This document shows, piece after piece, positions 6,001 through 34,000 of a stretch of DNA of 64,000 nucleotides. Where the stretch lies: contig OZ281494.1 in assembly GCA_965637545.1 (NCBI GenBank), positions 11,718,001 through 11,782,000 on the forward strand, written 5' to 3'. Under the pieces are notes generated by a model. It was given only the letters and a program-made list of their open reading frames with translations, searched no databases and was not told where the DNA came from. A program made the position numbers and the translations under genes. How positions within the stretch are numbered: position 1 is the first letter of the stretch; each line of letters opens with the position of its first letter. The DNA is from Phallusia mammillata. Its lineage: Eukaryota.

Positions 6001-7722
6001 TTGATAGTGATCCCAGCATCAAAACACTGATGGAGGATATACAGTATCCTGCAGAAGGTGACAACATTAAGGGTTTGTGCATTGCTAAGTTAAAACCAGA
6101 GGAAAACTGGCAGCGTGCGGAGGTCGAGAACAAAAGTGATGGCACCAAAACTTTATTTTTTGTTGATACAGGCAAAGTAATGAACAGCAAAAGGTTCTTG
6201 GTTGCAACAATACCTGATAATCTTGTGAATATTCCTGCTTCTGCAATTTGCTGTAGTTTACTGGACACTGACATTTTGAATGGTGATGAACATTTTGCAG
6301 GTGATGTTGTTGGCCAAAATGTGTTGATAACATTCCGAGCAGTTGAAACATATTATGTTTCAAACTTTACAATTCCCAAATGGCGTGTGGAGCTTTTGCT
6401 TCTTACACAGGTGCCAAGACATAATCCTAACCTCAAAACAGAAAAATCTGACACTGAACCTGGTGGGTTTGACCCCTGTGCAGTTTCTACTCCCCTGCTT
6501 CCAGATATACTGATTACAGGTGTTGACGGAGTGAAAAAGCCTCAAAACCAGACAAATGACTTTCAAGCTGTTGAAGGAAATCACAGTTCTGTACATGCAT
6601 TATTGCTGCAGCTGAAGAACATGATAGTTCAAGAAGCACCAAATTCAAAACTGCTTGAACAAACAGAGCATATCCTTACCAAAACTGCCAATTCTTCTGA
6701 ACAACCCATTCACCCATCAACAATTGGTGCAGATGGCGATAAGAGTTTTGCAACCACTGAAGCTCAAGAAGATCATAAGCGCCCTAGCTCGCCCCTCAAG
6801 GATGCAATTGAAAGTCCATGTAAAAAGCCAAGATTGGATCAGAATGTATTGGTTTCCCCAAACACCAGAGATCAGCTGTTTTCCAATGAATGGTTGACTG
6901 TTTCTCAACTCTTGCCAAAAGCCCCTATTTGTGAAGGTGATGTCCATGAAGGCTTTGTGTCTCATGTGAATACGATTCAGAGCTTCTACGTCCAACCATA
7001 CTTTCTCATTGCTGACAGAGAGCCCTGCTCTATCATCAAACCTGCAGAATCTGCCGAGGTATCTATGCTGTGCTTGTTTAAAAAAGATAATCAAGATGAA
7101 TATGACCGATGTGTAGTTCTCCATATTGGATGTGATTGGTTTACAGTGGGCATGATTGATTCAGGGGAAATAATTGAAGTTGAAAATCAGCAGCTTTTCA
7201 CAATGCCAGATGAGTACAAATCTTACCCACCGTTGGCTATACATTGCTCTCTTTCTCTGGAAAATCATTTAGATGAAAGCTCAGATGATTCTTTGAAGCT
7301 GTTTAAAAGTTTGACTGAAGGTGAAAAAAACCTACGAGTTGAGTTCATAAACCCCCCCTCTGATAATTCAACAAAGTGGACAGTCAAACTGACCATTGAT
7401 TCTTCAGATGTCTCTGAACTTTTGGTAAACACCCTATCTACCAAACCTAACCAACCCACAGATGAAAATGTTTGCCCAGCAAAGGTTGTGAAGCCAGCAA
7501 GAATTTCTGGTGGACCTTTATTGGATATTGGCCCCACCTTCCGTAGTTTGGCTTCAGTATCACTGCCATCCATCTCAGAGGAGGATGTTGAATCAGTAAA
7601 GGGCAACACTTACATTATTAATCCCCTTCCAGTCCCAATGTCATCTGAGTCTTCACTTTCTGTTATATCAGACAGTGTCTTTGTGTCAGAAAATGAAGCA
7701 AGTGAAATGGATCCTTCACCAG
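3..7722 (+). CDS. Giant Tudor-array exon (>7.7 kb)
   Basis: ORF 69..7748 reads through a CCAG|GTAAGA donor at 7722/7723. The last residues of the ORF (KSNILKS*) are intronic. Confidence 0.9.
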
Positions 7723-10684: not shown

Positions 10685-11234
10685 AGCCCTAAATTCAAGT
10701 GCCTTAACAGTAACAGACTATACTTTGCATAAATATGTTTTTCAATGCTACTGCCCTATGTTACTTAGTCTTTTGATGCAGGGTTTTTATCCAGTTGTTT
10801 TTGTCACTAGTAACTAAAAAGTCAACAATTGTTTTTTCTTTGACACATCCGGTCCTGAAATTTTCTTTGTTGTTTGAGCTTTTCAATGTGAGTTCCAAAT
10901 TGTCCAAAATTTTACATTGCCCAAACGATTCCCCAACCCTTTTGTTGCCTTATTTTCAGTTCCTTTGTTTTCTGTCCTGGTTGGTTGGTCGGGTTCTGGT
11001 GTCTTCGGTTAGCAAGTTCGTTTACTTCATGATATAATTTGTGTCAGATCGTGTGTACCACTGTAAATGCACGAAATAAATTCATTTCTACATATATTCA
11101 AGCTCCATGCATAGATACATATTTTTACAAAAACTTTTCAACAACCGATTCGCGGAGGTCAAAATCTTTAAAAAAAAAATTACATGATCAGCTCAATTTA
11201 AAACGTCGTATCCACTGGTGGTACCCAAAGATGG

Positions 11235-11377
11235 CAGTACGGTACGGTACGCAGCAAATTTCATGAAAACGTACGGTACGTAGGTATGGTACGCAAAGAA
11301 AGCTGAGGTACGGTATGTGGCACGGTCTTTCACTAGAGCGTACCACCGTACCAAAAGCGTACCGTACCACCGTACTG
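11235..11377. repeat. GTAC-rich foldback (inverted-repeat) element
   Basis: CAGTACGGTACGGTACGC at 11235 is inverted by GCGTACCGTACCACCGTACTG ending 11377. Internal GTACG/CGTAC motifs are also mirrored. Confidence 0.6.
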
Positions 11378-12689
11378 GTACGCATATTAAATGTTGATTA
11401 AACGGTCATTTTTGAATTGTTACCATTTGCAGATAATATCAAAATTGTCTGAAACTTGAATATAAGTTGTTTAAAACATGATTTCATCACAGTGTCCCTG
11501 TACCAAAATAGTGCTCAAAAAAGTTTATGACGTCACTGCTTAATAATGCGTGCTTACTGCTTACCATGCAAAAGGAGGGTTACGCGTGTAACGGCATAGG
11601 CGCCGAGTGGGCGGTGGCGGGGTGGGTTTGTAAAGCACGGTGGCGGCCACCGTGGATATTTTAATTTGTTTGTAGCGGTATAGTACGAAACATCGTAAAA
11701 TCTGAAAAAAATTGGGAACAATTTTGCTCTTAAACAAGCATGCTGGCATAAAAGCAACAAAACGCGTGGAAACTGCAACGTGTTTTGGTTAGAGCTTTGT
11801 TTATGACGTCAAACAAATTGTTGGCAGTCAATGTATGGCCATTATTATGTACAATGTGATTGCTACCATTTGTTATCGAAGAGGCATGTATTTCAGTGGA
11901 TATACAACATTTTGCATTTGAAGGAAAAATCTTTTGTAACGATCGATTGCGCGAGCTTGAACGCCCAGCCGAGTGCAACTGGTGTTCCTTTATGTCATAA
12001 AGTTTATGACGTACAGAGCCCAAATCTTGATCCTAAGTGTCTTGAATAGATGGCCTTTTCTATGCTACACCTGAAAACACGCCTAGGCTTATATGTGTGA
12101 AACATAGCATTATTTTCAATTCCAGTCGTTTGTTTACCAATATTTTGCAACAAATTCAATTGAGTTGAGTTTATTTTGCTTGAAAAAAGAAAACAAAGCA
12201 ACACAATTGAACTAAAATAATCACCAAGTCGGTAGCCTTTAGCTGCGCAGTGTTGAATAGCGCAAAGGTCGGTATGTTAGATGTCCGACAAGCATCCTCT
12301 TAATTTCTGCGTTTCAGAGCAACCAGCCTACTTTGCATAAATCGATTTTGTACACTTCAAACTTGTGATAATTACAACATAGACAGTTTGGCTACTCGGG
12401 TTCAGACGGAGGCCATTGGTATAGGCACGGGTAGCCTACATAGGCTAAGCTTTTTGTAACTGACGGCCACACAAAGACTACACGGGTTCTTTATTTTTAA
12501 GGGCCACCAGGTGTATTTTGTTTAAAAAAAGCATGGAAAAGAAATGGAATTTATGCGTCGCTTTCAATTTTCCAAGGGCGTCGCAGAATATTTCCGTTTT
12601 GTGGCTTTTGTTGTTGTATCAATAAACCTAACTTTAATAATAATTTTCCCCATTAGCTTTTATTTGCTGGTGCGTCGCAAGTCCAGAAA

Positions 12690-13904: not shown

Positions 13905-16900
13905 ATGGAAGAAACAAATCTGAATACAGATGACAGGCTTATTCCTTCAGAAGAATCAAGTGTTGAGATAAAACCCAATGGAAAAGATGTTGAGGTTGTT
14001 GTTATCCATAAATCAGAATACCGAAAAGAGAGCGATGCTGATTTTGTGGACACTCAGCAACTAAAGACCAAGTTGTACACGCGTCGGTTTCTGATAATGG
14101 GAATTTTTTGCCTCTATTCAATGTCAAGTGCATTTCAGTGGATTGAATATGCCATTATCACACACATTGTCATCAAATACTATACACACAGCAATGAACT
14201 GTTTGTTGCATGGACTTCTATGATTTACATGCTGTCATACATTCCACTAATGTTTGTTGCAACTTGGATGCTTGATAACTGGGGTCTTCGGAGAATTTTG
14301 CTATTCGGAGCCACTTTAAATGCAGTGGGCTCCCTTATAAAAATAGCCAGTGTAAACCAGTACTATTTTATCATATCTTTTGTTGGTAAGTTCCATTTTT
14401 GTTGTTTTTCAATTTAAAATAATATTGTTTTCTGTTTTAGTAGGGGATTTTTATATCTTTACCCAGTTAATGAATGAATTGGTGCATTCTGTATTTCTGT
14501 TTGGGTGAATAAAAACAAAAATTATAACTTCATTTCAAATCTTCAAGGTCAAACTGTTGCTGCATGCGCCCAATCTTTCATTTTGGAAATCCCTCCCAAG
14601 ATAGCTTCATTATGGTTTGGTCCATCAGAAGTGTCAACGGCAACATCTGTTGGAGTATTTGGCAACCAGGTATTTTTGGCTTGGTGTATTGTCTAACATA
14701 CACTGTTATTTCAGTCTTTGTCAACTAAGCCATTAATTTCTGCTGGGTTAGTGTGTTCTGTTTGACCTGCTGTGGAGTTAATTTGGTAGTTGCCAATCGG
14801 TATTAATAGGTACTGGCAACCTGCAGGGCTAAATTAATACTTAGACATTAATTAATTAAAGTTTGCACTGTTAGTGTGTACTCTACACCTGCAGTGTCAT
14901 TCACTAGGCTCTGTGCTTAAATGTACATTTGTGTGTTAAATACCTGATCCCTGCAGTATGTATTTGCTTGACCAGTTCATGTTGACTAATTTCCGGCGTT
15001 AGAAATGCAAACATGTGTCTAATTGATAAATGACAAGTGTTAATATGTCATTATTTGACTGTAGTAAAACATACTATTAAATCAAATTAATTCGTGCCCA
15101 TCTCATAACTGTCAATTGTATTACCAAACTTTCTTGATTTATGACATACTTAAATCGTTTTTGCAAATCCCAGATGGTTCAAAGCTGTCACATTCACATC
15201 AGGTTTTCCAACATAGTTTTATAATTTTTAGCACAAACAAAACATTTTTATGTAATCAAAGTTTGTCAAAAATACATTGTTTGTAAAAACTATGACCTTA
15301 CCAGTAAAAAAATGCCCTGTTGCAAAAATGCGAGGTATTGAAACAGTATATGTTTCTAGATCAAATCACTAATATCACAATATGGAAAATATTACGTGAC
15401 CGGCATTCGTGACCATCGGTTCCTGTTAGCATCTGTTTTTAGCAGTTAACTGTTACTGCACCGCCGGTTCACTTCCGGCAAATAAACCAAGGCGTTTTGT
15501 ATTAAACATCGATAAGCATCGTTGTGGTCAACAGTGGGCCTACGATATGATGCAAAAACACGTAGAGTGCGACCACAAAAATGCATTGCAGTCATATTTA
15601 ATTAAGCTTTATTGAATTTTACATGGTGTTGTGGTTTCTCGGTGTTTCAACGTAGTCGGTATACGTTATGATTTGAGCCTTATGTGTATTTTGACATTCC
15701 TTAGTCTGTGTAGTAACAGCGGCTAGCATTTGCGTTTTTCACCGCAGCACAAAAACTTCCAAACTCAAGATTAACTGAAGCAAACGATTTGGTCGTATAT
15801 AGTAATAGGAATCGGTAATTTTCTGAGATATGGTTAAGTGAACGGACCACGTAGATAAATAAACCGAATTCTTTGTGCTACAACGTTGCAAAGAATTTTT
15901 TTAGAACAGGATGTTAGCAAATGTCAAAACTTCCGTTTTTACATCCTTCATTTTTTAAACCTTAAATTTACGTGACTTATATTTGCAGCTTGGTGTGGCG
16001 CTCGGATTTCTTATTCCTCCCTTAATTGTGCCGGATTCCGATAACATGGAGGCGATAGCAGCGGGATTTCGGGTTCTTTTCATCTCATCAGCCGCCGTTT
16101 GCACGATAGTGGTTTTCCTTATATTTTTCTGTGAGTTTTGAGAGCACCCATAAACGCCATTAATGGTTACTACTCATTGTCGTGTGGCTAAGCAGTAGTT
16201 AATGTTTATGATCGTTTATCGTCTTGACGAGACAATTTATGACCAATTTCGGTTAAACGCACAACTGGATCTATTGTAGTTTGCAGCCAGTTTTTGGCCT
16301 TGCTGTCTTTGTTATTGTGTATAATTCTACAAAAGAAACATAAATTGTCTTAGGTATTTATTGAAAATGTTTTAAGTTTTAGGTACACCTAACTAAGCTT
16401 TTCATCCGTTGATCGGCCAAATATTGTGTTACAAACTGGCCATTTAAACAAAAGCAAAAAATTTACACAAAATTGTGTTTGGTCGGCGATGAATCATCCT
16501 TGTTTTTTCCCCAGTCATTCGAGACAAACCACCTCTACCTCCAAGCAAGGCGAGCGCAGTTGCTTTGCAAGCTGAATCCGACAACAAGGAGGAACATACG
16601 TCATCGTTTAGTAACTACAAGCGTTCGATCGGAGCCCTTATGAAAAATGTCCCCTTTCTTTTACTGCTTGTTAGCTATGGTGAGTAAATCTTGCCCAACG
16701 ACGGAGACCAAACTAACAGCTGTAAAATGTGTTTTTCTCGACAATTCAGCAAATCGGCACCTGCAAAACAACTAACTTCGCGGCGTTGTTGCTTGCTAAC
16801 GTATCCAGCCTTTAGATCGAAAGGAATTGTGTAATTTGACTACTTGACACTATTTGCCAAACTTTGTTCAATGATCGACTTATTTCGACTTTGGTTCCAA

Positions 16901-19900
16901 TTCAAATACTAAATCTGGTAAACACTATTTGACCTTCGGACATCAGTCAGCAGGCGAGGTGTTGTGTTGTCGTGGAACTTTCCGCGTCACCTGAGTTGCT
17001 GCTGATCGATAACCTAACTACGTCATTAGATTTTCGGAGGGAATCAAAGTCGATCTGTCAGAACTTGTTGTTACACGTTTGGTTTTATGTTATATTTTGG
17101 TTTGAGTACAAAGTACAGCCTTTGAACAATGGTGTAATTATATTTACCTTCATACGGAAGTTTGCACTAAGCTTTATTGTTTGGCCAATACAGTTTTTCC
17201 ATATATGGTTCGTTAAGTGGTTTCGACTTTGTGTCAAAGGTATTTTTTATGGTGGTTTTAGCCTTACTTAAATGGTTTCTGAGCAAAGCTAAAAAAGCCT
17301 ATAGCAGTTCATAACTATTTTTACATGGACAATTATTAAGTTTTTTTGTATTTGTAGGAATCAACACTGGAACTTATTACGCGATCGGAACCCTCCTAAA
17401 TCCGATCATGCTGCCATTTCACCCGGTAAATGAAATAATTTTTGGTGAAACGCCGAAACTTGTCGTTGTTTTCTTGTATGTTATACATTGTGATATATAT
17501 TGTTGCACTGTTTCTTAATCTTAACAGGCTTTTAACTGTTTTATCCTCAACTTTTAGGACGCTGTCAGGGAAATTGGTCAAATCGGTTTAACAATGGTGG
17601 TTGCTGGCCTCGGTGGTTCGGTCATCTGCGGTTTCTTTCTCGACAAAACAAAATACTATAAGTAAGGTTGTCTTGAAAAACGTTCACCTTCGTTTGTTTT
17701 AAGCTTGAAAAAAAATCATTGCTTGTCAGTTTGAACGTTTCTCTCGATGGTTTTTAACCCATTTCAGGATTTTTTTCTTGTTTTCAACCAGTGGCTCTTT
17801 GACACTTTTTGTAGTAATAGGGCCTATATATAAAGGAAGCAAGTCTGTGTACCCGACGTCCAATTACCCTCGTTTTATAAAACTTCTAAATCCACTGCAT
17901 GTTTTGCATTTATGTATTCGTTTTCACTAGACCCCTTCAGGGACCTCGAAACCTAGTGTGGGAATCCCTGTTGCAAATGAATGGCTATCGACTGTCGGTT
18001 AGTTCCAAACACCTCTCGTTAAGTAGAATCTTTGACCTATTTGTTTACCAACGAGTTTGGGTGGCAAAATGTAACAGCGCCGTGTTGTCTGGTCAAAATC
18101 TTAAATCTGCTTCACTGTCCTATTTTGTGTTGGCTATTTTAGTCCTTGAAGTCGTTGGGCACCGAAATGTGTTCGTTAGACGCGGGCTGTTGTTAGGCCA
18201 TCAGTTGTGACGTGGGTCGATTGATTTCAATTATAACTGACGGCTGAATTTTCCGAACTGACTCCCGTAATTTTAATTAATGACGAATCAACACATAGCA
18301 ATATTGAATAGGCATTTTTTCTTTGTAATTGGTCGAAACATACGCAATATTTTGCATGCTTGCTCAAATTAAAGGAAATAATGCTGACATTGAAATATGA
18401 GTTATTTGTAGCCTACATGTTTAAACTGTACTAAACCCCGTCGAACCCGTTTATCTTTTTTCAAAAAAAGCGGGTATGAATCACTCATCATTCTCTTGCC
18501 GTTTTGCAGCAACAAAAGTTGGATGACAATTCAAATCTTTCTTCCTCATTTAGTTGGGCGTAGTTTCTGGATATCCTTCACGTTTATGTAGTTTAGTAAA
18601 AAGTAACAACAATACAACGTTTTGGCGTGTTATCGCTCCATTTTGTTGTCATTATGTTCAATTTTTTTTTTCCTTATTGTAATGATTTTTTAAGACTTCG
18701 ACTTTTAATATTACAGGGGCACGACGGTTGGAATATATGTGCTTTCCATGGTGTTCATGTTTGTTTTCACTTTTACATTACAATTAAAACTTCTTTGGTT
18801 GGACTTCATAACGATTTTCATGCTCGGGTGAGTAACACTGCTTGGTGACGTTTACAGCCTAGCTACTTTATATGTTGACGTTTAAATCCGATTAATAAAC
18901 CTGTTTTGTGTAGCCATCCTTTAAATAGTTTTAGTCTTATTGATTTTGTGACCTTTTTTGACACAACGCTTTATATACAGCTTTTTGTGCGATTTGCTAT
19001 TTTTGGTCGCATTTTCATATACTGTACTACGAATTGACCTGCAAACAAAGTACTTATCTAGTGTTAGCAGAAGCCAAATTCGGAAGTGCGATAGCAAGAG
19101 TGGCGCCATAAGATTGTTTGTTGTCTGCAGATTTTTTATGACCGGCTACCTGCCCATAGGATTCGAGTTTGGAGCCGAACTCACTTACCCAGAATCGGAG
19201 GCAACGTCAGCAGGACTACTTAACGTTTCTGCGCAGGTAAATTGATTTATTTGTTTAAGTTCTATGCCGACTGTAATTGCCCGATAATAAAAAAATAGTT
19301 TTATGGTTTGCTAATTTTTTGTGGTGGGCTTTATATTTTAACCCAGCAGTTGCCATACTCAAATTCTCATAAGGGCCAACCTAAGATGCCGCATCGTGGG
19401 CTCATTTCAATTGCTGTAGTTGATTTTGGCGTTTTACTCAATTTAAAAGATAAATTCTTAATTAGGGCATTGCGGTGAAGCGCCTTTGTGCTGGTTCATT
19501 GTTTGTGCCATATCAAAAACTTCCAACACTATCAGCAGTCTTGTTGGTGCTCTATTAATAGCACCGCTGTTGTGGAGTCGGTGAAACCTGAAAGCCAACA
19601 CCTCGATATCATGTGTACACACAGTGTGTTTTCGTTTCAACAAAGTGCTTTCGACCTTTATACTATTTGGAGACAGTGTAAAAAGGCCTTCTGAACTCAG
19701 ACTTTGCCCGACTTTTGCTTTTGAAAGAAAACATTTTGTTACCAAGAAACCAAAGCAAGGTGTGATATTAAAGATATACTACAAATAAAAACAAAATGGT
19801 GTAAATTGAATCCCGGTTGGCAAACGTGCAAGCGGCAAAGTTACGCATAGCGTCCGTCGCTACAATCGTTTGTACACTGTACAGTACATCCATAGAACTA

Positions 19901-21489
19901 GGTTGCCTTTAAACATGTTGTCATATGTATGCTTCAATCGTTACTGGATGCTACACATCTTAGCTTGCATTGTGTTATCGGTATTTGTTCAATTTTGTGC
20001 ATCCAAACACGTAAACAAAATCATGTGCATCCCAAGAAGTAATGATTTCTCTCTCACAGTTCTTCGGTATTCTGTTCATTCTGGTTGCCGGGGAGCTTCA
20101 AAAATCTTACGGTATTCTGGCTGGTGACATCTTTATGTCAGTGGCGCTCTTAGTTGGAACTGTGATGACAGGTAAGCCGATTCTCACTCCGCAGCTGTTA
20201 TAGCCGCCAACAAGGCCAATATAGCATCGCGAAATCCACCTTACTGGCTACAAAACATGTCGAATCCAAGGATTTTCGAGCTGTTTTTGTGTTACGAAAT
20301 CATTCCGTGTGACGCCATGTGGGTAATACGTCACAATGGTCAAATCATCCCGCTCTTGAGAAAATCAATATTGTATCCGCAACCCTTCCCTTACAACCGT
20401 TTGTATTTAGCTGCTACCGCAGATGCTTGGGGGCGTCGCCCAATGCTACCGATTAAGAGATATGAATCTTACATGAAATCGATGCTAACCGGGTTTCCCG
20501 TTCCAAAAAAGACGTAGACAATTAAATTAGGGAGCCCACTCGAGGTTTGGCGTAATTGATTTCCATTGTTTGGTGTCAGCGATCAATGAAAGACGTTTCT
20601 TGCCGTGATTGCTCGATGTGTGGAGAAAGTTCCTTCCTGCTTGTCGATACTGAATTAACGTAAATCTGTGCATGGCGAGAAAATTAAAAAAAAAACATTG
20701 TTAAAAAAATGTTTCCGTTTTACCACAAACGCTTTAGAACGGTGGTTCTCAACTGGTGGTCCATGTTGACTTTTTGGGTGCTCGACAGGAAGTTAATTAT
20801 ATTCAATGATAAACTAGAAATAGTTGCATATTTGATTATTGATTTTTCAAAAGAAGCAAGTTTATCCAAGTTATTGTTTGTTTATTGTTAGCTGTAAACA
20901 GTTCTTGATATCACCCATCGAGATTATGTATTAAAGGAATATATTTTAAGCTAATATGCTTGTATAGGGTTCTCTCTTTATCCTTAACAATTGACTAGTC
21001 CACGATATTCATGAAATTGAACTGGTTGTCCATGGCCTGAAACGAGTTGAGAACTACTGCTTTAGAAGGACGTGCTGTTTTGTTCCGTTTTCGTTAAATC
21101 TACAAACGCATTTGTGACAAATCACTGCACACAAAGCTATGTGGTTAAGCTTTTAATGCGTGATCAAAACGCCTTTGTTTACATTTTAGTTGCAATCAAA
21201 GCGGACCTACGAAGACAGGCTGCCAACAAATCGTCGGCACTTGTAAGTATAAACATAAACACCGATTAATTTCACAAATTCAGCTTTAAACCTTTTCGTT
21301 CGTTCACAGAGTGATTGTGACGAAACAAAAGCAACTGAACTTATGCAATGTTCCAGCTTGAACCACAACGCTAATAACAATAGCAACCGCAATTATACGT
21401 CATCACCAAATCATGACGTAGACAATGATGACGCAAAGTTGATACGTCTCACATCAGCGTCGTCATGTTACAGTGCCGATACGCGGTAA
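13905..21489 (+). CDS. FLVCR: FLVCR-family MFS transporter (SLC49A; choline/ethanolamine, historically heme), 11 coding exons, about 547 aa
   Basis: Family motifs [89 protein letters not shown] and [10 protein letters not shown]. Exons: 13905-14385, 14548-14669, 15989-16130, 16515-16679, 17358-17425, 17558-17661, 18717-18827, 19131-19236, 20060-20171, 21190-21242, 21310-21489 (TAA). All are GT-AG and total 1644 nt in frame. Confidence 0.95.
20740..21059. mobile_element. hAT-type MITE (320 bp) in FLVCR intron 9
   Basis: TIRs CGGTGGTTCTCAACT / AGTTGAGAACTACTG. Perfect 8-bp TSD CTTTAGAA on both sides. Confidence 0.9.
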
Positions 21490-23556
21490 TGACGATACGA
21501 TTGTGGTTTTCTTTTTCAGAAAATTTCTTTTTTCTTTTTCTTTTTTTTTCTTATCCAATGGTTGTGAATGTGGCGTTGGTGGTTCAATAGTCAGATTACT
21601 GTCAAAAACCGATTGGATTTTTGTTACTTCTACATGAATGATCCAAAATGTTTCAGTTTCTGTTGCTTGCATGATCCGCCATGATCAACGTCTTTTTCAG
21701 GTTCCCACTTTTTTGAAATATTATCGTTTTGTGCTTCAACATAGTCAACAGTTTGCCGCCAATGATCAACATATCACACCTGAAACTGTCATCACCTTTT
21801 CCGCAAAAATTTCAGCTGTGATGGCCGATTGGTGCAAAGTTTGATATCGGTCATATTGAAATGTGTGCAATCACATGGGTGCGTTTGAAAAATAGTGGAA
21901 AGAAGCTCCATAGCGTCGCGTTGTGGCCGATTTTTTTTTTCTATTTCGTGCTATTATTTGAGCGTTGACTGTTTATATTACATTTGCGTGCTTTTAACTG
22001 TACTTAACGCTTATACTCATCATTACGGCTGTTCGCATAACCAACAGTGTTCCTCTAAATCCAGGTAAATTGGTTTCTTTCAGTCTCCCTATCAATTGAG
22101 GCTTTTACATTTGTTTGACATTTGTTGTTTTTGATTTTTTAAATAATGTTGAATACTTTTTCGTGGTAACAATACTTTGGTTACATGCTAAACACCTCTC
22201 CGTTGATGAATACCGTTCTAAGAGATAGATATTCGAAGATAACGACCGTTGTACAACCGGATACTAGGCGCATTATCGTCAAAGAAATTTAGTATGATTT
22301 ATATGCAATGCTATCGTCCCTTGTGGTGCAACTAGCTTGCTTATGATGCAGGTTTTTAACTATCTAAGCTATAAAGGCGAACTTCTTTTTGCTTTTTCTC
22401 GGCCATATGTAGTTAATAGTTTTGCAAACAGTAATCAGATGGAGTTATAATGTCCAATGCATTGTCCTTCGGCAAACTGAGCAAAGATTTATTTTTGCTT
22501 TTGTCTTTAATGTTCATATATCCCCCAACAAGAGCCATTGAACGATAATTTTAAGGATCTGTGAAACCTAACAGTATGTTCTCAATTTGTTACTTTGCTT
22601 TTTGGATCAGCACATTTCAAAAGCACTTGTCTAACTTCTAAGCATAGTTGTTTGTGGAAATATTTTTATGAGTTTTGATCATCGTTTATACTGCTGTACT
22701 AAATTTAGAGCCGTATTTTTGTGATTATCTTGTACTAATTGAGTGTTATGCAACATGTATCTGGGTATTTTTCTTTCATTATCTCGTTAAATCAAATTAA
22801 AGTCACGGCAGCGTTTACCTTAGCATTGAAACACAAGATGTTGAATCTGAAATGTTATTGCAGTTGTAGCTTGCAAAGTGCAAAAAGTACGAAGTTGACT
22901 AATCCTTTACACAACATCTCCAGCAAGAAGTTTATGTGACATTGCTCTAACCTCAAGGACTCTGATTGGTTGAGGCAAATTTAAGTCATTAACTTCGTCA
23001 AAAAAGAAGTGCCAATAGACACGCAAAACAGGCCGGTTACTTTACTCTGGACTTGATGCAAGGCAAAAAATAAACATAGGCTAATTGGTGAAAAAGTTAA
23101 TACTACTGTAACCTTTAGCTCTGCCACAACTTCCACCAGTTAGTTATCGGTAGAACGATTAGAAACGAACAAACATTTGCTGAAAAGCGTGTTGCGAATC
23201 GACGACCAATCAACTACACGAAGTAAGAAACGTGGACGAAATCTCATTTAAAGTAGCAAACACAGCACCATTGGAAAGCGATATTATCACAAACAGCAGC
23301 TGACAGTGTGAAGATTGCGATGAGCGAAACTTGATTTTAATTTGAAGCGAAGTGCGATGTTCAGTGTATTCAGTCACCAAGGTAACCGTTTTGATCATAA
23401 ATATATGCACAAGGGTATAGAAAATCGCAAATCGGAAAAACCGTTACAAGGCAAACACGTGGATATTCGCATCCAAGCGACTCCGGATTTCCACCTAGCG
23501 GATCGCGCAAGTGCATGGGAGTTGCCACCAAGGGGGGCTGGAGGCGAATGTATTGG

Positions 23557-25091
23557 TCATACGTAATACTCTTTGTCCTTGTCGTGCTTTTGTGATTTGG
23601 CGTCCCTCTTCATTGAACCGTTTTTAATTGGTGTAACCGGTTTGCCTTTCTTCGGCATCGCGCCATATTGTCTTTCTCGCTCGTCAACGTTATACGTCAC
23701 GGAGTCCCGTTTTTTAAACCGGTACATGACGTAAAACAGCAAGAGCACGCAGCAAGCCGCCGCAGCTGCAATTCCCGCTATCATGGCTGTAGTAACGGTC
23801 GTAGCTTGGCCGATGTACACCGAATTCGTGACGTTTGACCCCACATCAACGGTGACGTCAAGCGGCGAAGATGACGTGTTACTGGTGTTGATGATGTTGT
23901 CTCCCATCGGCGAGATCGGAATCTTGATCCTCTTGGTCTTGTCTGGAGTCTGCGCACCGCCGCCGCTCCTCGTCTCTGTGACGTCATTGGTAACAAAAAC
24001 ACTCGGTAAAGGGGCTGACGTGGCACTGCTGTTGCTTTCGTAGGTGACAGAAAAGGCGGCAGGGGGTTGGGTCGACGACCGCCGGGGCGTCATTGGAGGA
24101 TTAGGCGGCGGTGGCGAGGAGGTGACTTTCGCCTGATCAAACCGGATTGAACCGGTTGAAACAGGCACCGAAGTGAGCGTCCTGTCGCTTCCCGCTGAGC
24201 CTGTCCAATCTGCCGCAGCGGTCGTGGGAATGGGGTAGGAGGGTTGTTGGTCTGTGTGTTCACCTGACGTTGCAATGGTGTTGGTAGTGGGTGGGGAAAA
24301 GAGCAAAATACGTGGATTACTTTTATGCGTGGAACTGTTCGGTTTGCTAACCGTGCTAGTGGTGTGTGTGTTGTAGTTTTGTGTTGTTTGAGTTGTGATA
24401 ACTGGTTTGGCATTGGGCTGGACGACCGGAGGATGCAATAAAGCTTCTTGGGTTGACTGAGGACTTGATGTTGGCTGTTCAGGCGTAGAGGATACAGATA
24501 CTGTGTTAGAAACCGAAGGCGTCGTGCTTGGTGGTTGTAATGTCGTTGGAAGTTTACTTGTTGAACCAATATGGACTTCTTGCGACGGAACAGGGTCTTG
24601 TGAAACTTCCTTTCGCGTAAAAAGATTAAGGATATCGCTGAGGCTTGCTTGAGAGGGAGGTGATTCAGATTCGGATTCGACATCAGTTTCGTCAAGATTC
24701 GATTCCTCGTAGGATTCAGGGCTGGTAAAAATGTCGACTATTTCATCAAAACCTTCCATTTGAACTTCCTCGACCTCTACATCTTCATCTGCGTCCTCAT
24801 ACACGCCCTCTTCCTCCTCATAATATTTTACGTCATCATGGGTGACGTCATCGACTTGGTCCTCGTCACCGTCCAGTGAATTGGTGGACGGAGTTTCATT
24901 TGTAAAGAAGCCGGATTCAATAAAGAATCGTTGAAGATCAGGTGCCAGCCCGTTGCCACCAGTTATGCCGTACTGCGCATGCGTGGTTGCCGGTGACGTA
25001 GCAGTGGTTGTTGTAGTTTTAGTGGTAGTTGATGTGATGACGTCATGTTGCTTTGCGAGGTTTGTGTCAATAAAAATCCCGGAGCCAGAAC
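23557..25091 (-). CDS. NRXN: Neurexin terminal exon (transmembrane isoform): SG repeats, acidic and Ser/Thr/Pro-rich stalk, TM, cytoplasmic tail
   Basis: Acceptor TTTTCAG|GT at 25092/25091 is in frame with ORF 23557..24804. TM segment MIAGIAAAAACCVLLLFYVMY; tail RFKKRDSVTYNVDE...KEYYV*. Confidence 0.93.
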
Positions 25092-28000
25092 CTGAAAATA
25101 TAAAATAACGGTAAGTTCGGCTGGTATAATATGATTGGGTTTTAAACGGTCTTGGTTTCGGTATAATTTTATGACAGTGGAACTTTCAACACATTTGTAT
25201 CTTGACAACTTAAGTACAGTATTATGCAGTACTAGCATTTTGTGTCCAAAACATATTTGCTTAAAGGTCAACGTAGAGTACGAAAACTGCCAATAGTTTT
25301 GCCAAGAGGATGTTTATTTAAAAGAAAGAAAATGTTTCAAGGGTTTTTTTAACAAAACACAACGACACACAACAAAGAATACTTACATTGTGCAATGCTC
25401 CAGATGTTATGTGTTAGCGTGTAAGCAAGCAAAAAAGAGTGAGGTTAAATCTAATTCATGGTATACACGAAATCAAGTTCTGTTTAACTGCGATGATATG
25501 TGCATAATATGTTTAATGTGTATAATATTTGCGTATGACCTGTCTTGTGAAGTGTAGCAAAAACTCTTAGTTTTGTGAACATGGCATACAATTTTTGGCG
25601 GCAGATGTAGTTTATTGCATATTTTTAGACTGGAAGAAACGAAAAATAAAAGCGGGTCTTGCGATCTTTTAAGACACGATAAATGTTAACGCTGAAATAA
25701 GTACTCCGTGTATCGCGAGAAGATGCCACTGCCGCATGGCGAGTGTGGCGCCATTGCAGCCTTGTTGTGAGAATGAGTAGACTGAAGTTGTTGTGGTGGA
25801 ATGTGGTTGGTTGTGGTGGTGATGGTGGTGGAATGGGAACAGAAAGAGAGTTGAGCGCACAGTTAGCCAAGTCGTAGTTTTATAGGTAGAAAGATTTAAG
25901 GGTATTGTATTCTAAATGTAACCACACACTGTGTATCCTAGAGTTCACTACAGACAGAACACAAACTGATACCTTTCTCCGAAAGCGTGTTGATGTTTGT
26001 TTCAAAATTTTTAAAAAAACTGTAGGAACCTTTAAAATTTTGTCAATTAGGTAGTTTTTTGTGGTATCTAGACATTATGTATGCGTTATCTTTTTCTGCT
26101 TCATCTGAATTTATAAACGAAAATTGACAGTTTCCACTTGACCTAATGATCATCCGGTAAATGGTAGCAGTTTGTGTTCTGGAAACTAGAACTAAGCGTT
26201 ATTGGTAATTATAACGCCAAATCACATTCTCCCTGGAGCAGATCTACTTTAAATTTATATTAAAGTTGCTATTTGATCTCACCTGATGAGTTTGGACACA
26301 TATCCTCGTCATCACAGTCGTCTGGATCTGATCCCTGTGGACAAAACAAAGATTTTTTATTCAAAACAGTCGACCCTTAAACTGTGTAATCTGCAATGTA
26401 ATAGGCGGATATCTTACAAACATGTGCTACTTGATCAAACTTATAAAGTACATTTAACATTTTAAGCAAAAAGATAACACGAATTCAGAGTTGCATTGGG
26501 CTTTTTTCCTGTATGTAGCACTATTGGATTTGGCCAGAAAAGATCAATATAAGCTAAATTTAGATGACCATTGGCAATTTCATTAAAAAACACAAAAAAG
26601 TGCTGCTGGAGTACATGTATGTGTTTGACATAGCAGCAAACTTACATTTGGAACGAACGGCGTTGACTTGGTTGTTGAAAAAATGGTTAATGTGGCCATG
26701 GTGGTGGTTGGTTGCGAGATGGTTGGATTGGTTGGTGAAATGTCAGGACCACCTATTTTCGTGACGTCACCATAGAACTGAACACGGTCGTCATCTGAAT
26801 AAAGCAAGGTGACAGAATCAGAATAACACATGACAAATGGTATAACTTCTGTAGAATCACATTTAAATCTTGTTCAAGTGGTCCAAAATAGTGTGTTTGG
26901 ATAAGATCGTTTCCATTATTAAGCCAACCGTTTAGAAACGTAGAGAATGTTAACCCTTCCTTCTTCATCGTACAAGTTTTGTACAACCATGGTATTTCTA
27001 GTTTATATTAGTAATTTGAAAACCTGTATGAAACCAAACTTCTCTGTTTCACATATTTTTTTATAAATAACGATGTGTGGGAATCTTCACTTCGACTTAT
27101 TAGCTATTTAAGTGAATTGCCCATATCGGAGATAACAATAAACTTACTTCTTGCTGCGAGATCGAACACACGAACATCGTTGAAGAAAAGTCCCATCATT
27201 TGACCGACGAAAGGTTGCGTGATATCTGGGGATCGTCTGTTGCGTGTTGGTTGTTGCAACGTGGACATGGCGCTCTCACTGAGCAATCCACCGATTTGAA
27301 TAGTAGATTGCGAGTTAAATACCGAAGCCACTCGCTCTGTTAGAACATACAAAGGTTTTGCCGTGCAAAGAATTGTTTTGCTTGGTTTTGGATAAATTAA
27401 CAACATTAAGTTTGAATGGTAGTTAATTGTTTAGAATTTTGCAACAGGACAAGGTTTTTACAAAGTGATTTAATTGAAAGTCAAATAAAAAGTTATACTA
27501 ATCAAAAAATAGACTAGTGCTATGGAAGATTTAGGTTAACTAACAAAATCGTAGAAAAAGTTCTTATTGTGGTTATACCTTGTGTTATTACTTCCATGCA
27601 TTATGTTAGTTGTTGGATATTAGAAACAAGTAACATGGATGAATTGTCAGTTGTGAAAGTACTGGTTAGTAGCTGAAAACACACACACGCTCTCACACAA
27701 ACAAACAGTACACACAATCATACACACATAATCGCGAGTTAGCCAAAACCAAAAGAAAAAATGTTAGTACCTTTGCCTTGCAACCACGAATCAACCGCGG
27801 GTCGGGCAGAGGGTGCAATGGACGGGCTTGCAAGGGCAAAGCGGGAACGTGCATCCCCTACGACAAATAATAGGCAGAGTGAGTTTCACACCAATGGCAA
27901 GACACGAGCAGATGTACACAAGTTGTTGTTAGTACACCGGTGCATTGCTGCGGCTCTTCATACTGATGTGTACCAAACTAGAAGCAGGTTGTCCATACTT

Positions 28001-31000
28001 TGTAGTAAAATACGTTCTAACCGATTAATGCTTTTGGGAAATAGTACAACTCATAGTTAATTGGTGTGGGTTTTTTAAAAGGTTCATGGGAGATCATGAC
28101 GTAAATGTTATAAATTTAACCCGATGGTTCCCAACCGCGGAGGAATTTTTAAAACTGTATGGAAGGAATTTACTTTATTTTGACATGTGGTTTGTAAATA
28201 GACACTTTAGCTCAGGTAATATAATCTGTGAGGTTGATTAAAGACCCAATTTTAAATGATATTTGTATGGTTCATCCACTATGTAGTCTATCAGGGAGAG
28301 ATGACAATATTTTGAATTGTTAAGGAAGGAATTCGTCGAAAAAGTTTGGGAACTACTAGTTTAACCTATTCATCTATGCAATTTCATTCGAATGGTGAAC
28401 GATAAATTACGTTCATTTTCTGTTACTAGTTGCTAAAACTCGTCATCATTGTATAAAACCAGCATCATGTGTGGTACGGGGTATTCCTGATGAACCCCGG
28501 CGGTCATGTTAGTAAAATGAATTCGTGCAAAGACACCAGTTAGAAATGTAATCACGGGTTATTTACCAAGTTGGATTCGGATAGTAAATGCACATGCAGT
28601 TTAATGTGACTTTGAATGCCAACCTATATCTCTGTACATTTTGCGAGTTTAAAGACATGCAAGACTGCTGTTGCATCGACCTGCCAATGTTAATGCGCTT
28701 ACTGACCAAAAATTGTTTTAAAAAAGATGTTTTAGTTTTAAAAAAGATGTATTCTCAGTAGGCTGAATCATAGCACGCCAGGCCTATTAAAGGCTATACC
28801 GAAAATCCCGGAAAGGCTCCTGTAGTAAGTTCGAATTTTTCTAGCTTACGCCTTGTCATATGGGAATGCTTGGAGACCGGCTGATTCCGAATAACACCCT
28901 CAATAGGCCTGGCGTACTTTGATTTATATATGATTGTGCCGTGATAGCTGGTCTGCGTTAATGTTTCAGGGCTGATCCCAGTTGTGAATTTATGTCCATC
29001 TTAACTTAGCAGGCAGATTTCCCATAATGCGCTCAATCGATTGGCAAGTTGATCAACAGCATGCATGAAAGTCACATATATTAGCAAACGATATTGCCCA
29101 AACCTATAAGTGCGATTTGTCGCGGACTGACATAGCGAACTACTTATTCAGCTAAAATACCTTGTTCTATGCTATATCGTATACCCCTGTAAGGTTACGA
29201 GTGTAAAGAAAACACATCACACAACAGCGCGTGTACTCACCACTAGGCGTAATACTTCTCACTGGCCAGTTGTTCACCCTCATCGTGGCATTGAGCCAAC
29301 GCCTGCGAACTTGTACAGTGTGGTAACTACCGTCCGACACCGACCTTTCTTCACGGAGTTCCACAGTTCGTCCGCCACCCACGTTAAAACGAAGCGTCAG
29401 TTTGCCATTCTCCTGCAGTTGCACCAGAAACAGTGTTACTGTGTTTATTGGTATGGTTGGATAGCGTGTTATTTATTATACAGTTATGGACAAATTGTGA
29501 AAACCATGCACCGATTTCACTCAAAACACATGCGCTCCTCGGTACCTCAGACCAGCTGTCCTAAGTTTCTGCGCAAAACCAGTGTCAAAAATGCATCCAA
29601 CTAACCCATTAGCCAGGGTGAAATGGCAACCGCAGGGGGTTGAATGTGTCAGAATTGACAATCTTGAGGCATTAACGCCGAAATGCAAATTCGCTCGCGT
29701 ACTTGGAATAGTTTATCGAACCAGATCTGGCATTCAACAGTGGGAAATGTTATTGATCTTTTTTTTAAACATATGCAAAAAGGTTAACACAGCGGTCCAT
29801 CGAAATACTGGCTTAAACTGAAGCAGAGAGTGGCAATCTTCTAGGATGTGCATGCAAGAATATGTGACTCGAGATTAAGTTCGAACCCATAGAATACTTT
29901 ACGATGCACCAACCAACGTATGAGCCGTATCAAAATTTTCATGTTTCGGGGGCATGTGGGTGAACCGCTGGGTCATTCGGGGTTAAACTTTGGGCGGATT
30001 AACTTCGGATAACTAACTAACATGTGTGAAATTTTAAATAATTTAAACCACTCTCTCTTGACCAAACGTTTGGAACAAATCAGCGCTGCACAGAAAAAAG
30101 TAATATTCTATAACTGTTCGTAACTAGGTTTGTTGATAATGTGCGCATCGACTTCTGGGCCGAGGACAGCGAGAACAGCACTTGAAAAAAACGCTTACCA
30201 AACGAAATGAAGGTTAGGCGACTCTTTTGCACACGATGAAATGTATGTACGACTTTGCGAGCCTTTGACAAACTTGTTAGCTTTCACACGCACACCCATA
30301 CACGCCCACACACACACACACAGACACACGCACACTCACACACAGAAACGTGGCATTCTCAATGCAAAATCTTCTGTTAGCGGCGCCAGCAAAAATAGGC
30401 ACTTGACGTGATCCAAAAAGAAAACGTTAAGTACGCTGTAGTTCTTAACCTGTGGGTAATTTGAAATTTTGCAGGAGGTAATTACGTCATCATACGTCAT
30501 CGTCATACTTTTGTGATGTTATAGTTAAGAGATTTTTGAAAAGGGACAAATGTACCTGTGGTTGCTTTCAAGGGTAACAATATTAAAAGGTTAAGAACCA
30601 CTGAGTTAAAAAAACGCGGGCTAAAAAATTGACAACTGTTTTCACACTGCGCCACCAAGCGACAAAATTTCTAATTTACTCTGTACGGCGTAAAGCCTGT
30701 TTTCTCCTAAAACAGGGAATATGACATAAGATCACGTCAAAAGCGCCTACCGCCGCAACTTATGCAAACCATGCATTAAAAACCGACAGGCATTAATACG
30801 ACGGCCAGCAACGCCGTGCAGCATGGAAACCTCCTTACAATGCTAAGCCGAAGGTAGTCTCGGGGATTGCGCATTGCCGAGTACACTGTAAGCAGGACGG
30901 CGTCGGGAGAGCGGCTCGCAAAGGCAATGTTCAGAACGTCATAACGTACGCTATGCCCAGAGAGCTCGCACGTAATGAGACCCTTGTTGAAGAGGTAGGC

Positions 31001-34000
31001 AGAAGAGCTTATGTGTTCTGATGGTGGGCACGGTGTTTGGCGTAAAAATAGAAACAATAGCACTTTAGATTAGGTAATATAACACTAAAACGGCTATTCT
31101 CAGTCCCCGGCAAGTGATTGTAATCTGTTCGCGACAGAAAGGCAAATTTTCAGTTCACCAAGGTTTCAAGTAAGGATGGCCTATTGTGTTGATCAAGAGT
31201 AAAAATTTGGAGCTCAGCAAATTGTTCGGATCTTTTACTTTTACAATATTGCCAAAAAAACTTTAAACGTCAAATTTTTTAGCGCAAATTTAAGAGAAGT
31301 TGTACCGGTAAAAACATGCACAAACCTTTGGTAAACTTTGGGCAATCTTGATCTTTTAAAACTTGAAATTCTGAGAACAAATGGCCGAGGGACTGAGAAC
31401 AATTTTCGCCGACATATAAACTCACGATAGAGAGTTGTAGATAGTCTTGAGTCGGCGGGTTTGTGTAACCGCTCACGCGCAAAAGCACACAATTGCGCAA
31501 CGAAGTCGAAAATCCGAGCCCCAGTTTATCAGTTCTGGTGCTCGGGTAGTCGTCACGCCATTTGTACAGTATTAAGCCTGTACCGGAGCCGATACGATAG
31601 CTATGGCCCTCTGTAAAATTCACATGTTATGTTACTTACAACGCCATTTAAGGTGTTGCCGATTTTGCGCCACATAGTCAAAGCTGTATAGCCCTTTTAC
31701 AACATGCCAAAAACTGAATTGATCGAGTTAGTACTCGTTTTGGATATTTTATGCCATCTTTTTAGAAAGTTTCAAATGGTTAGCCAATTAAATAGTTTTA
31801 GGCGTACCAACTTTAAAAATCATTATTGGCATTGTCAAGGCTATGCACAATCTGAAAACGTAAATAAACAGGGCAAATGTAAAATGTTTTATAAGTTCCT
31901 GGTGATGCTGAATAAAGAAATCATGCACGCCATGCATAAGTCCACCACACCATGCTTCAAATATGGAAACTGTTCATGGTGATAGGCAGTAACACTCTCG
32001 GGAGTTGAGCTTTGTATTATTGTTATTAAAATATATAGTATATTATGTTTTTATTTCCTGGTCTTGTAGCATTCGGAAAAGGGTCCTTGATCAAACAAAG
32101 CAAAAAAGCGCCTTTTCGGACGCACTGGTCACACAAATCAGAGCAAAAAATATGTGCGAAAACAAATGTTCGCTGTAGCGTGCGTTCGTTATCACGTGAT
32201 CAACGTTCGTATCGCACACCGCAAGCGGGGTGGGTGAAAAAAGAGGGGTCATGCTTTGAGGGGTGCACACGAGCGCTGCGCCCCGAAGCTGAAAAATCAC
32301 GGCACTCGTAAAAAGCAAAATGAAATGTGTTTGGTGACGAAAGGGGAAGGCAACACACTCGCTCTCCTTCGTTTGTTTTGCTTACCGGGTAGAGTACTGA
32401 CGTCTAAATCGGCCAGCAAATAAAAAGAGTTTCTTTTGTCGCTGAGAGTTATCACTATGTGCCGTTTATTTATATTTAATGCTGGACCAAAATATGCATA
32501 CACTGTATAGTAAGTATAGCGTGGGCTTCGTTTGAAGTCGGAAACATGACGTCACAATCAAGCTACGTCATCAAAAAAGTCTGACGTCATATCTCATCTT
32601 GTTTTACAAAAGAGTTTTATGGGAAGTACAGGCAAAATTGGGAGTTTAAGTATCCATTTACGTTTAAAGTATTTTTACGAAGGACGTCCCTAGTTCAAAG
32701 TTTTTGTTTAGCACTCTTTGCACTATTGTGTACGCGTTTAACTGTTTTCAGAATAATTTTGTAATCACGCATAAATAAAAGCGAACCAAAAACTTACGTT
32801 GCTGGCAGAGTCGGCCTACGTACGACGTGAGGCTACAATCACATTTAAACCCGTCCCAGTGTTGTATGCATACTCCACCATTACTACAAGTGGTGGGAGT
32901 ACAAGCAGGTGATGGTTCTGTGCAAAAATAAAGTACACGTTCAAATTGACACCATCTAACCTTTTTGGTCCTAGGAAAAAAGATTATAAATAATGAAAAC
33001 TACCCCTCCACCCCAAAAAATCGTTTTCACAACACCCAAAATGTAGGTTTATTGCTTGTATGAGCAATCCTGGTTAGTCGGTCTTACTGAGCAAAATAAA
33101 CAGCAGTTTTATTACTTACTTAAGCACCCAGGGTTAACCTTTCCAACTGTTTGTTTTCCTCTTGGATCTCTCATATCCTGACTGACCCCGTTGACCTCGA
33201 GTGACCCCATGCAGCCTTCATATCCGGTCCTGGATGCCACTCTGTCTGGCAATTCGTATTGGTACATATTACCGGGGACGCCACCAATGTAAAATTTTCC
33301 TGCAACAAGGATACGAGTTTTTGTTTGGAATATAAACGAGTAATAAAACTGTTTGAGGTAAAAAAAAAGTCTTGTTTGTTAATAAGACTGTGTTAAACAT
33401 TCTGTGGACATTTATGAGCAAGTTTTTCGGAACGTTTTGGAAGCCACAAAGTTGCTACGATATTCCTATTGATTTACCGAACCACTTAGTTTTTTCAGCA
33501 TTACTCATAAGTGTTTTACAACCTTACAAAAGAATTTCTTCGATAACATCACTGTTTTAGTCTCAAAATGAAGGCAAACTGTGTTTTATTTGTGCTGTTC
33601 TGTTCTAGCATGAGAACATTATAATCGATTTCATCGTGGCAGTTTTGTTTGAAGGTTTAAATAAAACCTCTTAATAAAATCCACATTTGCCTACATATTA
33701 CTGTTATAAAGATATTAACCTTTCTTACCGCCTAAATCGAGGTTCTTATTGCCAACCCGTCCACCTTGAATGACTTGCTGTTTGTCGACTGTGAGGGTGT
33801 GGATGTTATCTTCCGAACGTTCAATGCGAATGTCGTGCCACGAATTGTCGTTCACCAACAAATCACCGTTTACTGTCAGAACCTTTACAAGAAAAACGAA
33901 TATAAGTTATATGGTTTAAAACAGAGGTTGTCAACTTATGGTAAAACTACTCCCAAGTAATTAATCTGGCATGCTTTGTGGTGAGTATAAGTAACAAAGA

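Follow-up and report, generated by a model that had tools for sequence, protein, structure and literature searches.

Introduction

A glycosylphosphatidylinositol (GPI)-anchored neurexin was recognised only in 2022, in the case of Nrxn3 of the mouse, whose dendrite-targeting inhibitory synapses require it. The region that generates it, AS5 (also SS5), consists of exons 23, 24 and 25 (Hauser et al. 2022, Neuron, PMC9275415). Exon 24 encodes an omega site and a hydrophobic stretch and contains a stop codon, and mRNAs that include it run on into exon 25a/b/c, which then forms a long 3' untranslated region (UTR); 25a, 25b and 25c are nested acceptors, exon 24 being joined to 25a, and 25a-containing mRNAs are translationally silenced (PMC9275415). 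Exon-24 NRXN3 incorporates 3H-ethanolamine and is membrane-bound, which demonstrates GPI attachment (PMC9275415); AS5+ Nrxn3 mRNAs had formerly been read as encoding soluble forms (Ushkaryov and Sudhof 1993, as cited in PMC9275415). The AS5 region is usually regarded as a peculiarity of Nrxn3. Here we report on a 64-kb stretch of the genome of the ascidian Phallusia mammillata (contig OZ281494.1, positions 11,718,001 to 11,782,000; the window in what follows), whose minus strand holds a single neurexin gene, and we propose that a segment of this gene, 25781-25387, is probably a functional GPI-signal exon. An original prediction, made from the sequence of the window, had placed here an alternative terminal exon encoding a GPI-anchored neurexin, chosen by a NOVA-type switch, and had correctly cited the mouse precedent through SS5. 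A further system that bears on this locus is the Nova protein of Ciona, which acts through intronic YCAY clusters on Agrin (Z exons), two consecutive sites being sufficient (PMC12445529).

Results

The alternative exon and its GPI-signal-like reading frame

In the window, the C-terminal 138 residues of the predicted neurexin are 100% identical to those of CAB3264446.1, a 1654-residue Phallusia mammillata protein annotated as 'Neurexin-3-like'. Logan contigs from four runs belonging to three studies (X1, X2, X4 and X12) were mapped on 23350-29300. That these contigs represent RNA follows from the GT..AG ends found on the minus strand at all introns and from the zero depth in neighbouring introns; because contigs omit rare variants, a missing junction is not proof of its absence. 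The features on which our argument depends are the following:

26334-26283, minus strand: Cys-loop exon, GSDPDDCDDEDMCPNSS, ending in phase 1, donor CAG/GTGAG
25782-26282, minus strand: intron removed by the predicted splice, 501 nt, retained in RNA contigs
25866-25862, minus strand: CTAAC, branch-point-like motif at the head of the AG-free zone, a consensus match only
25786-25838, minus strand: CA-rich, YCAY-dense tract, a degenerate CAC/CCA trinucleotide run just upstream of the candidate acceptor
25781-25387, minus strand: alternative exon, 395 nt; donor 25387 from RNA, acceptor 25781 predicted
25781-25669, minus strand: coding part of the alternative exon, V-YSFSQQGCNGATLAMRQWHLLAIHGVLISALTFIVS plus TAA
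25616-25611, minus strand: AATAAA, 52 nt 3' of the stop; the transcripts seen go beyond it
25386-25092, minus strand: intron between the alternative and last exons, 295 nt, GT..AG joint in X1 and X2, inner depth 0
25091-23557, minus strand: last coding exon, stop at 23559-23557, with three nested acceptors at 25091 (a), 24263 (b) and 23975 (c)

Joining 26283 to 25781 in silico yields V-YSFSQQGCNGATLAMRQWHLLAIHGVLISALTFIVS followed by a stop, a 37-residue tail that ends with TAA at 25671-25669 and is exactly the peptide given in the original prediction. The signals named there around this junction are also in place: the CTAAC branch point at 25866, the first AG (found at 25783-25782), and the AATAAA, which had been put at about 50 nt after the stop. 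In the case of the AG-free stretch, estimated at about 80 nt, such a stretch does exist, but that length applies only when counting from the branch point, and the full zone (25911-25784) measures 128 nt and ranks 7th in length among the 3154 AG-free gaps on the minus strand.

The layout of the tail is likewise as originally described, with small residues, a polar spacer and a hydrophobic C-terminus: a proposed omega Asn lies in C-N-G-A, after which come 8 residues of spacer and a hydrophobic end of 17 residues, without a cytoplasmic tail. To score this layout we used a crude rule of our own, which asks for small residues at omega, +1 and +2, a spacer of 3-10 residues and an uncharged hydrophobic end. 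The candidate tail passes this rule in its strict version and is the sole match within its 1.19-kb intron. As the thresholds were fixed post hoc, with the candidate already known, the associated background figures are to be taken as a rule of thumb only: AG-reachable phase-1 open reading frames (ORFs) pass at 0.16 per kb (loose) or 0.016 per kb (strict), and 6% (loose) or 0.3% (strict) of shuffled introns hold at least one match. The alternative exon carries an in-frame stop, and the last exon then becomes the 3' UTR of the same mRNA. A coding cassette that is read through was rejected, as 395 nt would shift the frame even without the stop.

Orthologous exons in other ascidians

A conserved hydrophobic-tail ORF at this position in sister species was among the checks named with the original prediction, and an exhaustive search with the neurexin C-terminus led to the neurexins of Clavelina lepadiformis and Ciona intestinalis, in both of which such an ORF is present. 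The Ciona protein XP_026689399.1 ('neurexin-3 isoform X13') ends ...CLNSS-AYKYWAMTPCNSAKQKTLYSNIPLMLWTCMLILVNNTV and the Clavelina protein CAK8680222.1 ends ...CSENS-GRKYAPRGGNSSFCCKYSSGPLLISWLALCYFLF; both are database predictions, with the junction to the tail exon modelled. The Ciona tail is a separate, AG-preceded exon that starts at L004:27327, 193 nt past the Cys-loop donor at 27133, and the Clavelina tail is a separate exon that starts at L003:34588, behind ...cccccataag, 496 nt past the Cys-loop donor at 34091 (L004 and L003 denote the Ciona and Clavelina loci). It is from these two orthologous exons that acceptor 25781 is predicted in Phallusia. In Clavelina, a donor (AAAG/GTAAGT) is found about 120 nt past the tail stop and the last-exon acceptor lies at about 35050 (L003); the matching distances in Phallusia are an intron of 501 nt, an exon of 395 nt and an intron of 295 nt.

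The three tails are in the same phase, are 34-38 residues long, and have a Tyr near their start and a [CG]-N-[GS]-[AS] patch at residues 8-12. Past the patch, each has a spacer of 8-10 residues and an uncharged hydrophobic end of 11-17 residues (11-13 in Ciona and Clavelina). The patch is encoded with synonymous differences (tgc aat ggc gcc, tgt aac tcc gcc and ggg aac agc tca), and identity among the three tails is 19-23% (MAFFT), as expected for a signal defined by its layout. The MAFFT alignment was dropped as a significance test, the tails being too short and too divergent, and a count of motif plus layout was used instead. A background scan of both strands of four loci (320 kb) covered 15,625 AG starts and 1,786 ORFs of 30-45 amino acids, and exactly these 3 combined the motif with the hydrophobic end, a result whose pattern was defined after the sequences were known and whose margin is large. 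The motif alone had one further occurrence, and the hydrophobic end alone was found in 8% of the ORFs. In an ascidian-like genome represented by metagenome contigs (L001), an AG-preceded, in-phase ORF at the same place ends ...ISLGRVFKTLACVLSQFTVVFIGALFPWAA, with the layout and without the motif. The contigs concerned (L001 and L002, from ERZ27241785 and JGI 3300001463, 43-68 kb) are filed as metagenome and contain an ascidian-type neurexin 3' end, with a Cys-loop exon at about 7137-7197 and a last exon at 10001-11722; they are host animal DNA within a microbiome assembly.

A literature search found no published characterisation of the Ciona or Clavelina tail isoforms, or of a GPI- or AS5-type tunicate neurexin. 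Protein homology searches with the 510-residue last exon, where low-complexity candidates dominate, and with a 63-residue ORF gave no match and were uninformative.

Transcripts across the segment

Transcription of the segment is specific, splicing uses a donor of its own, and in the transcripts seen it is internal rather than terminal. Record 3 of X1 (1776 nt) runs unbroken from 26308 to 25385 and then resumes at 25089, at a depth of 25.8 compared to 92.7 for the upstream exons; allowing for a 2-nt ambiguity, its joint is that of donor 25387 (AAT/GTAAGT) to acceptor 25091, and the record continues to 24238. Record 16 of X2 also reads through the Cys-loop donor (depth 9.9 vs 32.9), with a depth of 12.8 for the 25387 to 25091 joint, which is found in two studies, and X4 covers the segment at about 7 vs 28.6. 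Overall, the depth of the segment is about 25-30% of that of the gene, while other introns are at 0, so that the idea of an intron signal stemming from genomic DNA or from general pre-mRNA was rejected. In a second run search, X1-X5 contained 65-98% of the sampled words of 25400-26270, and X13, X14, X15 and X21 contained 20-42%.

The terminal nature of the exon, as originally predicted, is not supported by the RNA seen, as contigs pass the AATAAA and donor 25387 is spliced to 25091. No transcript ends near the AATAAA were reported; the X1, X2 and X4 contigs pass 25611 to reach 25387, 25406 and 25449, respectively, and minor use of the signal is possible. A short, gamma-neurexin-like isoform started from an intronic promoter was also considered and rejected: the frame into 25387 is open for 20 codons without a Met, the first in-frame Met is deep in the stalk with no signal peptide, and the contigs are continuous with the Cys-loop exon. 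In Ciona, the Ensembl model F6WKV2 reads through the Cys-loop donor (L004 27134-27170) and ends with CLNSSGKHIFILPHFMI, which indicates that a Ciona model has likewise captured the donor read-through of the Phallusia RNA.

Nested acceptors of the last exon

The product of the last coding exon begins with GSGSGIF and comprises a long Thr/Ser/Pro stalk, a transmembrane segment and a tail ending in KEYYV. The contigs join the Cys-loop exon to 26646 upstream (26646 to 26334) and, downstream, join donor 26283 to 23975, 24263 or 25091; these three acceptors are all in frame from this donor, which is used in about 70-75% of transcripts, the remainder reading through:

Acceptor 23975 (c): ETRSGGG after CPNSS; depth 62.8, 18.7, 26 and 5 in X1, X2, X4 and X12
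Acceptor 24263 (b): GEHTDQQ after CPNSS, the deposited isoform; depth 14.9, 4.9, 5.0 and 3.9 in X1, X2, X4 and X12
Acceptor 25091 (a): GSGSGIF after CPNSS; reached from 26283 in X4 only, depth 17.5

The innermost acceptor, 23975, is dominant in all four runs, so that neither the Thr/Pro stalk nor the SGSGSG run is part of the main isoform. The deposited Phallusia protein corresponds to the middle form (acceptor 24263), and current annotation holds one transmembrane isoform only. A short-stalk form that matches acceptor c is found in Clavelina isoform X9. The only donor from which X1 and X2 reach the long-stalk segment (25091-24264) is 25387, which puts the segment behind the stop and makes it 3' UTR, a placement that resembles that of the translationally silenced exon 25a of mouse Nrxn3. 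As the canonical junction gives CPNSS followed by GSGSGIF, the loss of the SGSGSG site in a GPI form, as originally proposed, is borne out. The simple switch between a transmembrane/PDZ form and a GPI form, on the other hand, does not hold, since the three nested acceptors also compete.

The YCAY-rich tract

The packing of YCAY motifs that had been noted upstream of the acceptor is the densest in the window. The 85 nt before the acceptor contain 10 YCAY (7 CCAC, 2 CCAT and 1 TCAC), compared to a window mean of 1.3, and all 10 fall within 53 nt (25786-25838); the peak, 12 per 85 nt, is unmatched on both strands of the 64 kb, the next-densest place (8) being a Thr-rich coding exon (26794-26646). 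A count of 10 was reached in 0.2% of composition-preserving shuffles. A YCAY cluster thus lies within about 200 nt of the splice site, as used to define Nova-regulated exons, and the action of Ciona Nova on the YCAY clusters of Agrin makes the NOVA idea reasonable for an ascidian. In the vertebrate Nova RNA map, a YCAY cluster between the branch point and the 3' splice site predicts repression, not inclusion. Control by NOVA is weakened by the fact that the Phallusia cluster sits precisely there and is not conserved, with 1 (Ciona) and 4 (Clavelina) YCAY per 100 nt upstream of the acceptor vs 10 in Phallusia. Tandem Repeats Finder (TRF) describes the core of the tract (25803-25831) as a degenerate trinucleotide array of 9.3 copies with 77% match, and the tract could just as well be a decayed microsatellite or a CA-rich element that serves another factor.

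Other features of the window

Upstream, the RNA contigs confirm an exon ending at 29241 and the exons 27857-27771, 27336-27148, 26794-26646 and 26334-26283. The 87-nt cassette at 27771-27857 is SS4-like; it is included in all runs and skipped in X2 (29241 joined to 27336, depth 7.8 vs 27.6). Two similar LNS6 half-exons, at about 30776-31063 and 31279-31623 on the minus strand, encode ...DYLRLSIV and ...DYLQLSI, and the same LNS6 segment exists in two alternative versions in the Clavelina RefSeq isoforms X3 and X9; judging from these sequences, a mutually exclusive pair of LNS6 half-exons seems to be conserved among ascidians. The intronic stretches 28126-28324 and 28723-29120 show very high contig depth in all runs, their loose ends contain tRNA T-arm sequence of the GGTTCGAATCCC type, and they are probably copies of a tRNA-derived short interspersed element expressed elsewhere in the genome. 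Downstream of the neurexin gene, ORFs on the plus strand (15983-20203) have transporter-like hydrophobic segments, which suggests a putative gene of the major-facilitator type.

Discussion

Taken together, these results support the existence, directly past the Cys-loop exon, of a conserved, GPI-signal-like alternative coding segment, as judged by motif, phase and position. The segment 25781-25387 is in our view probably a functional GPI-signal exon, and we consider it likely that it represents the Phallusia copy of an alternative exon that is conserved in ascidian neurexin genes and is the counterpart, in position and in function, of exon 24 of mouse Nrxn3. Splicing of the Cys-loop exon to 25781, a step that we predict for Phallusia, would give the protein a tail of about 36 residues before the stop, in which an Asn set among small residues is followed by a short spacer and then by a hydrophobic end. 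The protein would consist of the neurexin ectodomain without the stalk, the transmembrane helix and the PDZ-binding tail. The tail would most likely be cleaved at the Asn and the protein transferred to a GPI anchor. Donor 25387 joins 25091 and so turns the long stalk/transmembrane exon into 3' UTR, and the three nested acceptors of the last exon compete with the alternative exon and set the length of the stalk. The original prediction is, as a whole, partly supported.

Several observations weigh against this interpretation. The junction between 26283 and 25781, on which the original prediction rested, was not seen in the contigs of X1, X2, X4 or X12, where the 501-nt intron is retained instead, and the X1 and X2 contigs cross 25781 without a break. 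In the read-through transcripts the frame ends CPNSS-GEIK-stop, four codons past the donor, and as this stop precedes the ORF, the tail would be untranslated in the transcripts seen. Because contigs with the junction to acceptor 24263 survived assembly at about 15% of the neighbouring depth, the 26283 to 25781 splice is at most a minor species in these runs. At the level of the protein, two Ciona assemblies differ at 5 of 40 tail positions, compared to 1.4% in the neighbouring exon, which points to a weak constraint on the sequence of the tail, and the tail of the Ciona HT assembly (L004, with Y for C) narrowly fails the hydrophobicity cut-off of our rule.

These transcripts raise the possibility that the functional event at this locus is the read-through of the Cys-loop donor itself, i.e. 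intron retention with 25387 as an alternative 5' splice site, and that the working product is soluble or non-productive. It might be a soluble neurexin ending in CPNSSGEIK, or an RNA that is detained in the nucleus or targeted by nonsense-mediated decay and so tunes neurexin dosage, and the GPI-like ORF would then be an ancestral relic that is no longer spliced in Phallusia. Read-through is indeed the only form seen (unbroken over 26308-25385 in X1 and X2, at 25-30% of the gene depth, and then spliced from 25387 to 25091), the region is present in several runs from two or three studies, the Ciona model F6WKV2 likewise reads past the donor, and AS5+ Nrxn3 mRNAs were themselves once taken as soluble forms (PMC9275415). 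The peptides added by read-through, however, are short and unrelated between species (GEIK; GKHIFILPHFMI; GKTFYF; 54 residues in L001), whereas the layout of the downstream ORF is kept in three; in Phallusia this ORF is intact, the AG-free zone is long and the acceptor usable, and contigs are unable to prove that a junction is absent. We therefore regard read-through as the functional event as rather unlikely.

If the exon is used, its hydrophobic end might alternatively stay in place as a tail-less membrane anchor or a retention signal instead of being exchanged for GPI. The hydrophobic ends, of 11-17 residues with no charged residue, are compatible with such a role, but at 11-13 residues those of Ciona and Clavelina are rather short to span a membrane as a helix, the conserved Asn, which has small +1 and +2 residues and lies 8-10 residues before the hydrophobic run, conforms to standard omega-site geometry, and the mouse exon at the same position is GPI-anchored (PMC9275415), all of which makes a tail-less anchor very unlikely. 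Least credible of all is that the ORF arose in the intron by chance, next to a CA-rich tract that is a decayed microsatellite. The period-3 repeat found by TRF, the lack of conservation of the YCAY density and the frequency of loose GPI-like ORFs (0.16 per kb) are in its favour, but motif, phase and position are common to three species, nothing else in 320 kb fits, and the segment has its own spliced donor; we consider a chance origin highly improbable.

With the GPI-signal exon as our preferred explanation, the ascidian arrangement suggests that the AS5 module predates the split between tunicates and vertebrates and is not a late vertebrate addition. A broader scenario, which we put forward only tentatively and consider doubtful as a whole, is that the module (meaning here the GPI-signal exon, the three nested acceptors and a long-stalk segment that is mostly 3' UTR behind the stop) was already in the single neurexin gene of the tunicate-vertebrate ancestor, with mammals keeping it in Nrxn3 only, and that in Phallusia a CA/YCAY-rich mask at the 3' splice site, bound by Nova or an hnRNP-L-type factor, controls its inclusion, the upstream intron remaining detained until particular neurons splice it. 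In ascidians there is one neurexin gene, the larval nervous system comprises a few hundred cells, and Ciona and Phallusia embryos offer minigenes, CRISPR and a complete connectome; an exon of this kind would allow the choice between lipid-anchored, soluble and PDZ-linked neurexin to be studied in them.

In the case of Nova-regulated exons, the Phallusia locus is similar in that a neuronal synaptic gene, here an ascidian one, has a dense YCAY cluster by an alternative splice site, and differs in that the cluster lies between branch point and 3' splice site and is specific to Phallusia, which leaves it as a candidate element only. Ciona X13 and Clavelina CAK8680222.1 have the same gene, intron, phase and tail layout and, in Clavelina, a GTAAGT donor after the stop as well; they differ in sequence (19-23% identity) and lack the YCAY tract. 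Compared to mouse Nrxn3 AS5, the likeness extends over the whole module: the last exon and the one closing the ectodomain flank an alternative exon; this encodes an omega-type site of small residues and a hydrophobic stretch, contains a stop, and leaves the last exon as a long 3' UTR; and there are three nested acceptors, 25a, 25b and 25c in the mouse and 25091, 24263 and 23975 in Phallusia, with the outermost joined mainly to the alternative exon and the innermost near the transmembrane segment. Unlike Nrxn3, the Phallusia gene is the single-copy neurexin of an invertebrate chordate and not one of three vertebrate paralogs, and its upstream intron is retained, the upstream junction not being seen in four RNA runs. 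GPI attachment is biochemical in the mouse and is predicted here from the tail, and the likeness drawn here is one of gene layout and transcripts, so that homology with the vertebrate exon, rather than convergence, is an interpretation that we draw by analogy. The GPI-type neurexin exon of Phallusia is thus partly supported as a further case of the arrangement already known from mouse Nrxn3.

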